From Dimorphilus gyrociliatus (Eukaryota; Animalia; Annelida): 64,000 nt of DNA. This document shows, in pieces, positions 30,679 to 39,400 of this stretch. The position numbers were made by a program, and so were the translations under genes. Each line of letters opens with the position of its first letter. Within the stretch, counting starts at the first letter, position 1. The notes under the pieces were generated by a model. It did not search any database. It had not been told where the DNA came from and saw only the letters and a program-made list of their open reading frames with translations. The DNA lies in contig CAJFCJ010000018.1 of assembly GCA_904063045.1 (NCBI GenBank), forward strand, positions 1 through 64,000, read 5' to 3'.

Positions 30679-32826
30679 ATGAACGATAATAGGAGGAGAG
30701 AATCACCTATATTTTTTGGAAATCATTTGAATCAGAGTTTGGAAAGATTAGTGTATGCAGATATATATAGTTTAAATAATCCTATGGCTAATACTCTAAC
30801 GTAGATAATATTTCTTTTTAGGAATAGCTCAACTCAAAGCGAAAGTAGAGTTGTTTGCTGCGGTTTCTTAACACCTGTTCGAAGAACATTTTGCCTATTA
30901 GTAACATTCGATCTCATCCTTACTTTTCTTCTATGGGTCATTTATACACAAGTAGTTGGAATAAAACCATTTCCAAAAGAAGCTTTTCGAATGGAAGTAG
31001 GAGAATATAGTTTCAAAACGTCCATGTTTGATATGATTGTAAGTAATTTTGCTATTTGAACAAAATTAAGCAAAAAATTACTATAATCTTTTTATTACAT
31101 AAAAACCCGCAGATGGCTTCTGGTAGTCGCTTTGTCATTTTGTTGCTATTCTATTTAGCAATTAGAATGAAAAATCCCTGGATTGTGGGTTTGACTACTG
31201 CTGCCACAACTGTATTCCTAATTGTCAAGATTTTTCTATTCAACTTCACAGTAATTATCCTTTTAATAGTTTACCAATGCATGATAACTATTTTACTTAA
31301 TAACTATCTAAAACTACTAATAAATAAATAATTTTTAAGGATATACTTATATATAATTACTTTACAGGGTTCTAAACAAAATGTTATAACTTATATACTC
31401 CTGCTGGAATCGTTTGTCATCGCTTGGATTGAAGTGTGGTTTCTAGATTTTAATGTTCTACCAAGAGAACAAAAACTCAGAGATAGAGGTATAGAAAAAC
31501 AATAAAACTCATACATATATTGTATTCCTTAAATCTTCGCCTTATTTAACAAACTATCTTTTTTATATTTTTCCCTCACATATTTGACTTTACGCTGCAG
31601 AACTGCTGAATGGTAGAGGTTTTTATTACTTACCATTCGTTTATCCTAAACAAAACATATAATTATCCTTTAAATTACTGGTAGCTTTTATAAAGATTAG
31701 CAGAATTATTACACGTGTTAGTGATAATTACTAACAAGTATTTAAATCACTAATGCTAAATTTGTTTTATTCCCTTTTTACATTAAGCTATGATAGAGTA
31801 GTCAAATTTATAAACTATTAGAGTATAGGTTAAAATTTATTTAAACGTTTCTGCAAGAATTTATTACATCTATGCAGAGAGTTTACCACATATGGCGGAC
31901 GAAAGATCAGCATTGTTACACCGTTACCTACGTGCCACTTCTAATTATGATGCAACTAGTGCAGATTTCTATTCATGCAGAGAATGGTATAGCCCAACAG
32001 GTTAGCTTAAAAAAGGTTTTTGAAAGATAGCCAATGTTTAAGTAGAGATAATCGACAAAAACAGGTTCTGATGATGAGGCAGAAGAAGCAGACTTAGACA
32101 GGACTATTGTTGGACAGGAGTCTCAAACTGAAGCAAAGATGATAATAAATAAAGCAAAAGATGCCTGGGATCGGTGCTGGGCTATTTGTAAAGATAGTAG
32201 TACTGCTTGGAAGACAGAAGGCAGGAATGAGCTAGCTACAGTTCACTCTATAATTCTGCCCGGCCTGGGGAAATTTTTTAAACTTGAGTGTCTTTTGGAA
32301 GCAGATGTAAAATTATTATTCGAATTACTAGTTGTTAGACTGGAAGAGACGCCAGGATGGAATAGTCAAATAATAGAGTGTCGAACACTCCAATCATTAA
32401 CTACCAATTCAGACATTACCTATAGTATAGCAGCACCTGGAGCTGGCGGAGTTATTTCTAGCAGGTTTATTTTCATTTGCTCATTAATTGATTAACATAA
32501 TAACGCTATTTGAAAATTTCTATCCTAGGGATTTTGTCAGTGCCCGATTTTGGAAATGGAAAGAAGGTTGCATTCTTGCAGCGGCAACAGCTGTTAATTG
32601 TAGCAAAGCACCAGTTAATAAATTGTATGTAAGAGGTGAAAATAACTTAGTCGGGTGGCTGTTGCAGCCGGTTACAGATGAAAGAACAAAGTTCGTGTGG
32701 CTCTTAAATACAGACTTGAAAGGATATATTCCAAAATTTACTGTTAATAAAGCACTGTGTGCTGTCATGCTTGACTTTATTAGTATGCTAATTGTCAAAT
32801 TGAATAGTTTAAAGAATTATGAATGA
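30679..32826 (+). CDS. STARD3: StAR-related lipid transfer protein 3 (MLN64): MENTAL plus START domains
   Basis: VRRTFCLLVTFDLILTFLLW and FKTSMFD (MENTAL); WNSQIIECRTLQ..DITYSIAAPGAGGVISSRDFVSARFW and YVRGEN...WLLNTDLKGYIPK (START). Confidence 0.93.
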
Positions 32827-33047: not shown

Positions 33048-34185
33048 TCACGAAGATCGTTTTTTTAAATACCTAGAAAATGGGTTAGCAGGAATATAAT
33101 CAGATAATTTTTCAAATAGAGTTAGTTCTTCAATTTTCCACACTCCTACTCTTTTTTTAATAGCAATTCCCTCAGCTCTATTTAACCTTTTCATAAACCT
33201 TGCCCATATCGCATCATTTTCATTCACCTTTTTAGGAAGACCCAATCCCCTTTTAACAACTTCCTCATTGACGTTTACTATGAGCTTCCAAAACGAAGGC
33301 TTATGTAGTATAATGCAGTCCAAACTATTCGAATCGATTCTATTCATTAGCCTAAACCATACTTTTTCCGACATGAAATTGGATTTTAAATAGTTGACTC
33401 CTCCTTCTTTGAGGATTACACCAGCTAAGGAGACATTGAGCGATTTTGTATGATTATTCAAATAAGGAAGATGGATTAGACGTTGATGCTCTATTTTAAG
33501 ATTTCCAACTTCATCAATTGATCTAACAAATCCCTGATTGTTGAGTTTAAATTGGAAATGTTATTCAATAAATCAAATGAAAATTACCTGTAATTTGACG
33601 TGCCGGGTTATGAATCGTTCAGGGATTTGATTAGCACTTTTGAATTTCGTTAACTAATTTGAAAAATTGAATCTTAACACAACAAATAAATATTGAAGTA
33701 CGATTTATTCTCTCACCAATCTTCCACTTCTTCCAATTAAAATCAGACCTACGAAACCAGTAGCAGCAATTGTATACTGTAAGAAATAAACATGATATTC
33801 TTATAGTAAAACAATAGGCTTGTTGGTAGAAATCTTATATATAAGAATATTTATGATTTTCAAGCCTAAATTACAAATTGCTTTCATAGCTTTGTTATAC
33901 ATTTATATATTCTATAAAATATATGATCTAGCCTGATTGTGATTAAATGACTATCGATAAATTTCACTATGGATGAGAGATAGTCAAAACTAAACTGTTC
34001 ATCTTTGGTTTCCTACATTTGGATTCTATTTTTCTAGCTATTTTTTTAAATTGTACAATATTACTTGGAAAGATCCTATTCTGTTTCTTTTGTAAGAAGA
34101 TTAAGTTTTAAAACATTACTTTTGCTATAACACTTTTTATAGCTTCAGAAATGACTACTGTCTGAATATCTCCTCTATCGACCAT
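33048..34185 (-). CDS. C3orf33: C3orf33-like protein (SNase-like fold); 5' exon structure unresolved
   Basis: TKFKSANQIPERFITRHVKLQGFV..LKIEH..SLAGV..VWFRL..VNVNEEVVKRGLG..AE..AIKKRVGVWK matches the recalled C3orf33 pattern. ATG 34185 is tentative. Confidence 0.78.
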
Positions 34186-34983: not shown

Positions 34984-36048
34984 GAGAAAGAATATGGAAA
35001 AGTCAAATAAAATCCTCATTATTATTGACTTATTTCCTCTTTCCATTTGAAATAATACAAGTAGGGGAAAATCCTTAATACGATTTATTTTATTACTATT
35101 ATCTTTATTCTTATTTAACTAATTTTTTTTGAGTTTTTATACAAAAAGCTGACAGAGATGACGGACATAAGATAAATATATATATACAGCATACATAAAA
35201 AAGACTATTCGGTCGCATTATGGTCACACGGCATTTAATTACAAAGATTTAATAGTAAGTCTGATCCAGAAAAGTTATTCCCAGAAGTTAGTGATGATTA
35301 ATTGAGGAACTTTATTAAATAACAAACTTGATTAAAATTTAATCTTACCTTTATCTGGTAAATAAAAGCATAAAACCTTTAAAATAACATTTAGAATATT
35401 TATTTATTATTAAAATGTAAAATTGTTACCCAAAATTCGGACACTTCTCTCATACTCTCCTTTATTTGATCATTTTATTGTCCGTTTACAAGGGAAATGA
35501 CAATCAGTATAGAAATTAATCAAAAAATTATTATTATTCAAAGTTTAATTATGTTTAAAACGTATAAATTAAAAAGAGTTAATTATATCGCCAACCAACC
35601 ACCTGTTGCCTTTAAACCGGCAGGAAAATAAAGCAGCCAAAAATAACTTTAAGGATATAAGGAAAATAAAGACGGGGGAAAGCTTTAGATTTGAAAGACT
35701 TTCTATAGTAAGAGAAACTGGTAAAGAAAAATGAAATCTATTTGCAAGTTTTCTTATTTAGCGATTTTTGGCAAAAAATAAAATTCTATGACGTCATATT
35801 TTAAATCTCTTTTTATATATTATTGATATTTCTAAGCATCACGTAAAATGTTGTCTTAAAGTAACAATTATGGTTTTTACGATGTTCTATTGTTGTCTAG
35901 AAAGCTTTCTCGTGCAGCGGCGTACTTTTATTTGATGAACCATTACGGAAATTACACATAGGTAAATATCCAAATGACTTAAATAAACTATTAGATAGAA
36001 CATTACAAAGTTATTTACTATCATAATCGGGGTTGTATCATTATATCT

Positions 36049-36417
36049 TTAACCGTCTTTTCTTTTATTGAAGAAATTCGAACCAAAGTCTTGGAGGGAC
36101 CTCTTCTCTCCAAATCCTCTCTTATTATATATTTGATTTAAATAATCTGCCCATTCTCTCTTTTGGAAAATTGGAGATCCAAAATCTTCAGCGGACCATT
36201 TTTTATTAAACATTCCATTACCAAAGTCTTGAGCCGACCATCGTTTGTTAAACATTTTGCTACCGAAGTCAGTAGCAGACCATTTTTTGTTAAATACGTC
36301 TCCACCGAAATCCGAAAATGACCTCTTCTCACCAAATCCTCTTTTTACAGCGGCGGAAAATACCGGTGTAGATAAGCAAAGGAGGAGAACGATGGAGGCA
36401 AGTAGGTGATGGAACAT
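36049..36417 (-). CDS. Secreted multi-copy neuropeptide precursor (122 aa)
   Basis: Hydrophobic signal peptide (about aa 1-22) followed by 8 peptides separated by KR/KK dibasic sites. A splice acceptor TTTCAG lies 5 nt before the ATG. Confidence 0.93.
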   Translation of the reverse strand: MFHHLLASIVLLLCLSTPVFSAAVKRGFGEKRSFSDFGGDVFNKKWSATDFGSKMFNKRWSAQDFGNGMFNKKWSAEDFGSPIFQKREWADYLNQIYNKRGFGEKRSLQDFGSNFFNKRKDG

Positions 36418-39400
36418 ATTCTCTGAAAATCATTAAGCCTTGATCATATTAAGAGAATGGCCTAATTGTAAACTACAGATACAGACTTTAAAGAAGTAAA
36501 ACATCTTAAAAAATTAAAGGGAAGAGTATAAAGAGGTCAATATTAGCCTATTATGTTGAAAATTGGAGGTTTCAGGTATCTTTTATTAAACTATTAGAGT
36601 TTTCCCTTAATAAGTTTAGAAGCAAAATTAGTCTCCGTAGCCTGAATTTCAAAATATCCGACTCTATATTTCTTTAATTTACATAAGCCTTTTGCAAAGT
36701 AACAGTCGTAAATTAGAATTTATCAATATAATTTATATCAATCAATAGTTTTTACTTAATAAAAATTATCCTTTTCAATTATTGAATTCTCATTAAATTA
36801 TTATGAATACAGCAATGGAAATTGCGTGGCATTCCTTAGTTACCAGAAATTGTCTTATTGGTATTAAGCATACTAGAAATATCTTTATAATTTTACTAAT
36901 TGTACTCTAATTAAAGCAAATTGCTTCTTTAGATAAGCGAAGAAAAATTGATTTAGCTGCAGAAAAGAGCCATCTTCGTTAAATTTAATATATAGAGTTG
37001 TATCATTAACAAGACATTTCTCTAACTATTGTGAATTCGAAGTTAAAAACAATGAAATATGAAAGACTGCAAAGTACAGAAACATGTCAAGTATCTATCG
37101 TTCTATAAATAATCATCCATCATTTTAGATCACATTACTTCGTTCTTTTCTTTCAATTTCATATACCAATTGATTCGTTACAAGTTCTAGTGCAAAAATA
37201 TCCCTTTAAATATGGATAATAATGATTTTCTTCCATCTGAAAACAATAGTCGCGTTTATCCTTCTCTAAATGAATATATAATAAATTGTCAAATAGTTTT
37301 CATACTAAAGAAATAAGTGGTTTTCGAATTTTCACACTTTTTGCAGAAAATGCTTACATCTATATTGAGACATAAAAAAAAGAAATAGACAAGAGAGAGC
37401 AAGAGAGAGAGAGAGAGAAGGCGAGCAAAAAAAGAAAAAAAACAATTAACGCTTTCTCAATTCCTAGCCGAATCTGTCCTTTTCGCTGACAAATATTTTG
37501 GATTGATGAAGAAAGTTTCTTAGCTTACGTTACCACTACTTTATATTATTTCTTTATTTTTTTTCTTAGAACGCTCATTTAGTAAATTAATAGATGTTAC
37601 CACCCTGTTCCTATATTAGATTTTTACCATCTTTTTTTTCTTGAACTCTATATTATTTTTTTATTTTGTAGCCATAAATAGAAGAAAAGGTATTTTTCTT
37701 GATTATAATCATCAGGTAAAACTAATAAGGCAATACGAAGTGGATGATGGATATATGTGTTCAAATACAGTATATATATATAATGATAAAAAATATAAGA
37801 ATAGTTGGAAACTGTATAACCCCCTCCCTTCCCCATTCAATTATACATATGTCAAGTGTATCAACTTTCTTACTTGAGTCTAAAAAGCAAAGTTAACTTT
37901 TGAAAGAATATTTCAATATTTATAGAATATTTATTGTTTTCTTTTACATTGATATTGAAGATTATTTGGAGTTATATTATTATTGTTTCTATTATTAATA
38001 ATAAAGAAACTCTACTAACTATATGTTAGGGTGTTTTTTGTATTCAGTGAACTATAAGTTCTAATTGAAAGCTTAATACTTTACTTACTAGTTAAAAGAT
38101 GTCAACCTCATTGAACATTGTTTTTTGAAGAATACACTTAATTTCTATATGAGTAATAATCAATAAAGAAATAGCAATACCATACGGTACAAGTAACGAT
38201 TAAGTAACAAAAGAAAGATTTGTTTTTAATAAAATTAAATCAAGAATGATACAAGTATCTTTTGTAAGAGAAAACTTCAATGAACACATTTTACTAATGG
38301 AAGGGTTTTTTTTAATTATTCAACTAGCAATAGGCTGTTTTAATTATGTATTTTATTAGTCTAATAAATACTCACAGAAATTCCTTTCAAGGGAAAAAAG
38401 TGAATGGCTTGTAAATTTGATGTCCGTCCGAAGTTACGGCGGCAAATGACGATTTGAGTGCAGCATAAGCTTTAGCTCATAAATATTCATATCTTCATCG
38501 TCACTTTTTTTTCTTCTACTTATTTTAACGTATAATTTTATGGAATTAATTGAAAGTATAAATTATATAATATCTCTCATAGGAAAGAAAGTGGAATAAA
38601 CAGTATCAAGCGGCTAAAAAAATTAATAACAACTTTTTTAACTATAATCTTGATATATTTATGGGGCGTCTAAAAATTTGGCTCTTCTATCTCTGGAGTA
38701 ATAAAACATTCGTTATGTAGAGAATTCAGAATTAAATCCTCTATTAGTAGAATTTTTGTGGGAGTTTTTCCAATTTTTTTCAACTATTTTAGCATTATTC
38801 TACATGGAGAGAAAAATTTATAGACATCAGATGTCACTTGAATTTATGTAATGAAATAATTATAAACAACAGTTATTTACTATTTATATATAACTTATTA
38901 TACCCTACCATCATTAAGATTAAGCATACCTGGTCTTTCAACTCATACTTATATCCAACAAGAAAATACGAAAAGATTATAGAAAATTACGTTTTATAAT
39001 AAAAGAAAAACATAAACAAGATGCTTTAACTCTAAAGAAATTTATTAGACGGATAAAGGAAATTTTCTTTAAAAAAGAGAATCTACTTAGACTATATTTC
39101 GTGTCTAAAGAGAATTCTTGAGAAAGCTCCCACGCACCGGAAATAATTTGAAAAATCAGGTATTGCAAATTTTCGGCATTTTCCAGTTCTGTTTAACCCT
39201 TTTAGGAAAAAATCCAATAAAAAGAAACAGAAAAAGAGATAGGAGATAATGATTTATTTTCTAAAAAAGCATCAATATAATACATAAATTAGAAAAAAGA
39301 TTTATATAAATTGATGTTCTTTTAATATTTTATTAATAAAGTCGATGTTATATAATATATAAATTAGAAAACAAATAAACTAAGCTTAATTCTATTCCAT

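Follow-up and report, generated by a model that had tools for sequence, protein, structure and literature searches.

The open reading frame at 36049-36417, on the minus strand of the window (the whole 64,000-nucleotide stretch of Dimorphilus gyrociliatus DNA analysed here), is probably the single achatin-type proneuropeptide gene of this miniature marine annelid, published as DgyrP12689 'Achatin'. The gene is already known and its family is already named. What is undescribed is the atypical layout of the precursor, with five conserved lineage-specific peptides. A first-pass annotation of this DNA had left the precursor unassigned to any family. That description no longer holds. Supplementary Data 2 of PMC7854359 contains the entry 'TRINITY_GG_250_c0_g1_i1 DgyrP12689 Achatin', which is identical to our sequence in 122/122 residues and provides clear orthology to an already described precursor. 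The achatin label in PMC7854359 is a list entry derived from BLAST and cleavage-pattern screening rather than from a functional assay. The peptide list of the first-pass annotation had omitted two KR-flanked GFGE units, and these are the key to the identity of the gene.

Units of this kind are confined to the one locus. A degenerate coding pattern for K-R-G-F-G-[D/E]-K-R has only 2 matches across the 77.9 Mb genome, one at 36101-36123 and one at 36323-36345. Both lie inside the 36049-36417 frame, within 75 codons, and the reversed control gave 0 matches. No other achatin candidate was found in the genome with the KR-GFG[D/E]-KR scan or in the published list of PMC7854359. Nemertean achatin precursors contain a mixture of KRGFGEKR, KRGYGEKR and KRGFGDKR units, and a tick gene has been listed as 'Achatin-like (GFGE)'. 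In both the nemerteans and the tick, GFGE is accepted as a variant of achatin. The achatin type is represented by Achatina (GFAD), Platynereis (GFGD), Aplysia (GFFD/apALNP) and the nemerteans (GFGD/GFGE/GYGE). The Dimorphilus gene has in common with these a signal peptide, KR-flanked G-F-G-[D/E] and the lack of amidation. The achatin type also has one gene per genome, as is the case here, and in both a DY[LI]-containing segment is found directly before the KR-GFGx run.

To collect additional achatin precursors, JGI metagenome contigs were scanned for a pattern of two KRGFG[D/E] units in tandem; this yielded 25 animal-derived achatin precursor genes (L012-L036). Pairwise BLASTP of the worm precursor against the metagenome achatin precursors gave E-values of 1e-5 to 1e-2. 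A close family is formed by 13 of the 25 (alignment A3), in which a D and a Y show almost no variation eight residues ahead of the final KR-GFGD. When residues 90-110 of the worm precursor (aDYlNqiynKRGFGeKR) were aligned to A3 (vDYiNdeexKRGFGDKR) with hhalign, the two were found in the same register over 21 columns; the match is weak (E 2.4e-4, probability 44%) and is partly carried by KRGFG. The Platynereis achatin precursor has ...NDYLENLNNQ... ahead of a GFGD run. The Helobdella row of a published alignment reads ...SDYLRRQIY..., in OCR text that is partly unreliable. The 13-member metagenome family also has an invariant helical spacer (...ELERRLRQLQEARIAEAL...) between its GFGD runs.

No Pfam family was matched at E-values up to 10. 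The nearest clusters by ESM Atlas features are assorted multi-copy neuropeptide precursors (scores of 0.88 or less), which says only that the protein looks like a neuropeptide precursor. The ESM Atlas structure matches were set aside as meaningless at a pLDDT of 0.46.

The gene at 36049-36417 is real, transcribed and spliced. The coding sequence is an intact ATG-to-stop frame of 122 amino acids plus the stop codon, and the 77.9 Mb D. gyrociliatus assembly contains one copy of the gene. The Trinity transcript TRINITY_GG_250_c0_g1_i1 represents it in the data of the genome paper (PMC7854359). Further transcript evidence comes from three marine metatranscriptome runs (two, X6 and X9, from one study and X8 from another), whose contigs carry the joint 36422->38376. 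The joint defines an intron of 1953 nt (36423-38375) with GT..AG boundaries on the gene strand (CT..AC on the plus strand). Exon 1 is a non-coding stretch of 5' UTR that contains no ATG. Its minimum extent is 38376-38433, and the spliced contigs of the three runs cover 38376-38433, 38376-38427 and 38376-38402. Exon 2 (35909-36422, minus strand) is delimited by RNA contig ends at 36422 and 35909, and includes 5 nt of 5' UTR (AGAAT, with A at -3), the entire coding sequence and approximately 140 nt of 3' UTR. An AATAAA polyadenylation signal (TTTATT on the plus strand) is located at 35927-35932; an RNA contig ends 18 nt further on, at 35909, near which the poly(A) site would lie. One further run, X1 (2017), contains a single contig at 35175-36708 with a depth of 490, versus about 10 in the adjoining contig. 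This run was kept out of the expression evidence because its library type is not on record. If X1 is RNA, expression of the gene would be very high and part of the signal would be unspliced or read-through.

The first-pass annotation had interpreted the frame as a multi-peptide neuropeptide precursor of the prohormone-convertase type, an interpretation that our analysis upholds. The frame and the peptides that it described are present exactly as listed, both in the frame list and after dibasic splitting. The signal peptide that it proposed is borne out by a hydrophobic N-terminus, whose Kyte-Doolittle hydropathy averages 2.3-2.6 across residues 4-20. From the hydropathy profile the signal peptide spans residues 1 to about 21 (36355-36417), and under the -3/-1 rule it is probably cut after VFS or FSA. 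The precursor has nine dibasic sites, and splitting at these sites gives AAV, GFGE, SFSDFGGDVFN, WSATDFGSKMFN, WSAQDFGNGMFN, WSAEDFGSPIFQ, EWADYLNQIYN, GFGE, SLQDFGSNFFN and DG. The set thus includes two copies of GFGE, five xxxDFGxxxF[N/Q] peptides (hereafter DFG peptides) and one EWADYLNQIYN. None of the predicted peptides has a C-terminal Gly, so amidation is not predicted, as had been noted before.

All of the units are encoded on the minus strand. The first GFGE, an achatin-type tetrapeptide with KR on both sides, is at 36328-36339. It is followed by SFSDFGGDVFN (36289-36321), which is identical in a related species described below. The next three units are WSATDFGSKMFN (36247-36282), which differs in the related species by a conservative T to V change, WSAQDFGNGMFN (36205-36240) and WSAEDFGSPIFQ (36163-36198), the latter two identical in that species. 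The DNA of these WSA units is repeated in tandem, with a period of 42 nt, 2.8 copies and 77% matches. The first two are within the array, and WSAEDFGSPIFQ is mostly inside it (from 36179). EWADYLNQIYN (36124-36156) is a divergent unit that can nevertheless be aligned with the DFG units. The second GFGE, again with KR on both sides, is at 36106-36117. The last unit, SLQDFGSNFFN (36067-36099), is followed by KRK-DG and the stop codon, and reads SFQDFGSDVFN in the related species. The six long units share the template x-x-x-D-[F/Y]-[G/L]-x-x-(hydrophobic)-[F/Y]-[N/Q]-K-[K/R] (unit alignment A1). Chance alone would be very far from producing such a pattern: of 100,000 residue shuffles of the mature part, 0 attained 5 DFG, 9 dibasic sites or 5 junctions of F[N/Q] with a dibasic site. 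The combination of a hydrophobic N-terminus and dense dibasic sites is found in 1 of the 25 frames of at least 100 amino acids in the window, namely this one.

This layout differs from that of other achatin precursors. About 8-17 copies of the tetrapeptide are present in Platynereis and in the metagenome achatin precursors versus 2 in Dimorphilus, and with only two GFGE copies most of the Dimorphilus precursor encodes something else. Achatin precursors elsewhere have long acidic or helical spacers, whereas the Dimorphilus precursor, which is very short (122 aa), has six short dibasic-flanked 11-12-mers, five of them with a DFG core. DFG peptides are absent from the 25 metagenome achatin precursors and from the Platynereis precursor. 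The six peptide strings are not mentioned in the main text of open-text papers. One family of similar style was considered and rejected. Nemerteans and brachiopods have AxxxDF peptides (AKFNDF, ASWLDF; PMC8557429), which are likewise non-amidated spiralian peptides with A-x-(x)-x-D-F. However, these are hexapeptides ending in DF right before KR, while the DF of the Dimorphilus peptides is not terminal and has G-x-x-x-F-N after it.

The related species offers a view of selection on these peptides. The sole relative among 5.8 billion proteins in a word-indexed search is P0001, encoded on a 3.6-kb Logan contig (L001); a scan of the JGI metagenomes with the two-species alignment found 0 relatives. 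At the DNA level L001 matches the window in exon 2 (36428-35902, 79% identity, nearly coextensive with the exon as delimited by RNA) and in one downstream block only. When translated, the downstream block yields two conserved segments that belong to one adjacent gene of the same orientation. With microsynteny kept, L001 is the orthologous locus of a related species. In the window the two short coding blocks conserved with L001 are at 33926-34185 (minus strand), with 63% and 50% amino-acid identity; the gene to which they probably belong, as exons, lies downstream of achatin. A separate open frame at 32488-32826 (plus strand) contains …FVWLLNTDLKGYIPKFTVNKAL… and may be an exon of a START lipid-binding domain, which it recalls.

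Between the coding sequence and L001, 58 of the 122 codons differ and 49 of these 58 differences are synonymous. The corresponding values are pS 0.71, pN 0.044 and dN/dS 0.02, with synonymous sites near saturation. Both copies of GFGE, all of the dibasic sites and 3 of the 5 DFG peptides are identical in L001. The DFG peptides are as strongly conserved as GFGE between the two species, and are under strong purifying selection. All of the coding variants in the metatranscriptome contigs (10/10) are synonymous. The number of units is the same in the related species, which indicates that the array is older than the species split, at near-saturated synonymous divergence.

We read the DFG peptides as functional products because of this strong conservation and selection, and the conservation suggests that they are co-released signalling peptides rather than inert spacers. 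It is unlikely, but the most serious of the alternatives, that the DFG segments are mere spacers aiding folding, sorting or processing, with GFGE as the sole signalling product. The non-GFGD parts of other achatin precursors are treated as spacers, the published list calls the gene just 'Achatin', and the DFG peptides are so far predicted from sequence. However, spacers normally drift, and here dN/dS is very low, most of the DFG peptides are unchanged and every flanking dibasic site has been kept. The units are also regular in size, each is flanked by dibasic sites and they have been tandemly amplified, all of which is typical of bioactive copies. Finally, the DFG peptides outnumber GFGE five to two in the precursor.

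A second alternative, for which we see rather little chance, is that the DFG peptides are diverged peptides of the pedal peptide/orcokinin type and that the gene is a hybrid or a relative of the pedal family. The two groups do share a style. Pedal peptide/orcokinin precursors likewise encode tandem, non-amidated, dibasic-flanked peptides of about 10-15 residues, with hydrophobic-Gly in the middle and Phe or another hydrophobic residue at the C-terminus. Both pedal and DFG peptides are non-amidated, 10-14 residues in length and fit the pattern S-x-x-x-hydrophobic-G-x-x-x-F. An exhaustive phmmer search of 1.84 billion representatives recovered the pedal-type precursor P0007 (SLDSIGSSIFE and HFDSIGSGLV units) with an E-value of 7.5e-5. 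In BLASTP against P0007 the value is 6e-10, with SAEDFGSPIFQKR aligned with SLDSIGSSIFEKR. When P0007 is compared with the worm genome, the achatin frame ranks third (E 1.3e-3), behind two pedal peptide loci. However, P0007 was picked from 1.84 billion proteins for its likeness to the query, a score obtained in this way is no independent test, and the phmmer matches at similar E-values are to plainly unrelated repeat proteins (bacterial surface repeats and similar). Beyond P0001, the same search of 1.84 billion representatives returned no credible orthologue of the DFG peptides.

Direct comparison with the pedal peptides of the worm itself also argues against common origin. The mean best unit score barely exceeds that of shuffled controls, with z 1.9 (p 0.04) for pedal peptide 1 and z 1.5 (p 0.08) for pedal peptide 2, in keeping with the first-pass annotation, which had called the likeness to pedal peptide/orcokinin only loose. 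The DFG units do not carry the pedal motif x-[F/L/I]-D-[S/T/E]-[I/L/V]-G. The N-terminal x-F/L-D-S-I-G is absent from them, and D is at position 4-5, followed by F-G. Pedal peptide 1 (SFDSIGTSAFGGL) and pedal peptide 2/MLD (MIDSIGSSLL) of the worm have SFDSIG and MIDSIG, whereas the DFG units have S-F-S-D-F-G or W-S-A-x-D-F-G. In addition, GFGE is co-encoded with the DFG peptides, pedal peptide precursors lack GFGE, and pedal peptide genes are already present in the worm genome. The resemblance between DFG and pedal peptides is thus best regarded, from sequence, as one of peptide style, with homology not established. The pedal loci themselves were located in a six-frame search, with pedal peptide 2/MLD at G000:C1:3203104-3203430 (L003) and pedal peptide 1 at G000:C3:90290-90736 (L005); both open frames match entries of the published list. 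A cluster of precursors of the pedal-peptide-2/MLD type, with SLDTIGSSLFE, HFDSIGSGLV and WLDSVGSGLI, was also observed in ENA metagenome assemblies and is of animal source (P0007, P0010-P0014, L009).

That the gene is a lineage-specific new precursor rather than an achatin orthologue, with two GFGE units that arose by chance, is very improbable: the GFGE copies are few, the tetrapeptide is short and homology beyond it is weak, but the 8-residue KR-GFG[DE]-KR recurs at close spacing here and nowhere else in the genome, the DYLN-x4-KR-GFGE register agrees with that of other annelid-type precursors, and neither the genome nor the published list has a second achatin candidate.

EWADYLNQIYN belongs with the long units, and it is matched as well by the spacer that other species have before GFGD. 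Its DYLN-x4-KR-GFGE stretch corresponds to what precedes the last GFGD run in other achatin precursors. The long peptides may derive from the conserved 'DY[LI]N-x4-KR' spacer that precedes the GFGD run in other annelid achatin precursors. They would be a dinophilid-specific addition, mutually related as tandem 14-codon duplicates. The simplest history of the DFG units would be that a cleavage site arose upstream of a spacer element, which was then amplified. We put forward tentatively that the dinophilid achatin precursor was rebuilt in this way, with the DY[LI]N-x4-KR spacer cut and amplified into new DFG peptides that are co-released with GFGE and act on a non-achatin receptor. On the rebuilt-precursor reading, SxxDFGxxxFN and WSAxDFGxxxF[N/Q] would possibly constitute a new set of conserved, non-amidated DFG peptides, a proposal that we hold with similar reserve.

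The processing of the precursor can be outlined as a model. The 122-aa product would enter the secretory pathway via its signal peptide. Cleavage by prohormone convertases at the nine KR/KK/KRK sites would follow, after which a carboxypeptidase would remove the basic residues, as in established prohormone processing. Eight non-amidated products would be released: two GFGE, five x-x-x-D-F-G-x-x-(hydrophobic)-F-N/Q peptides of 11-12 residues and one EWADYLNQIYN. If Platynereis and molluscs are a guide, Phe2 of GFGE would be isomerised to D-Phe and the peptide would probably be active only then. The D-form of GFGE would act, by the same analogy, on an achatin-type GPCR. In Platynereis and Aplysia the achatin receptor is reported to be activated by the D-form only (PMC5747525, PMC10089201).

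The main value of this analysis is corrective, in that the gene is not to be counted as a newly found or orphan precursor. The first-pass annotation had raised the possibility of a new ligand family. For the precursor as a whole this falls away, as it is already achatin, but the DFG peptides may still be extra ligands. In this achatin precursor the tetrapeptide that gives the family its name is outnumbered. The five lineage-specific peptides, with a dN/dS of 0.02, are well suited as targets of peptidomics and receptor deorphanisation, in a nervous system that is very small and tractable. If the rebuilt-precursor reading is true, a new ligand family was born from spacer sequence inside an old neuropeptide gene. 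If the DFG peptides are active, the locus would show how extra ligands can arise from the spacer of an ancient neuropeptide gene.
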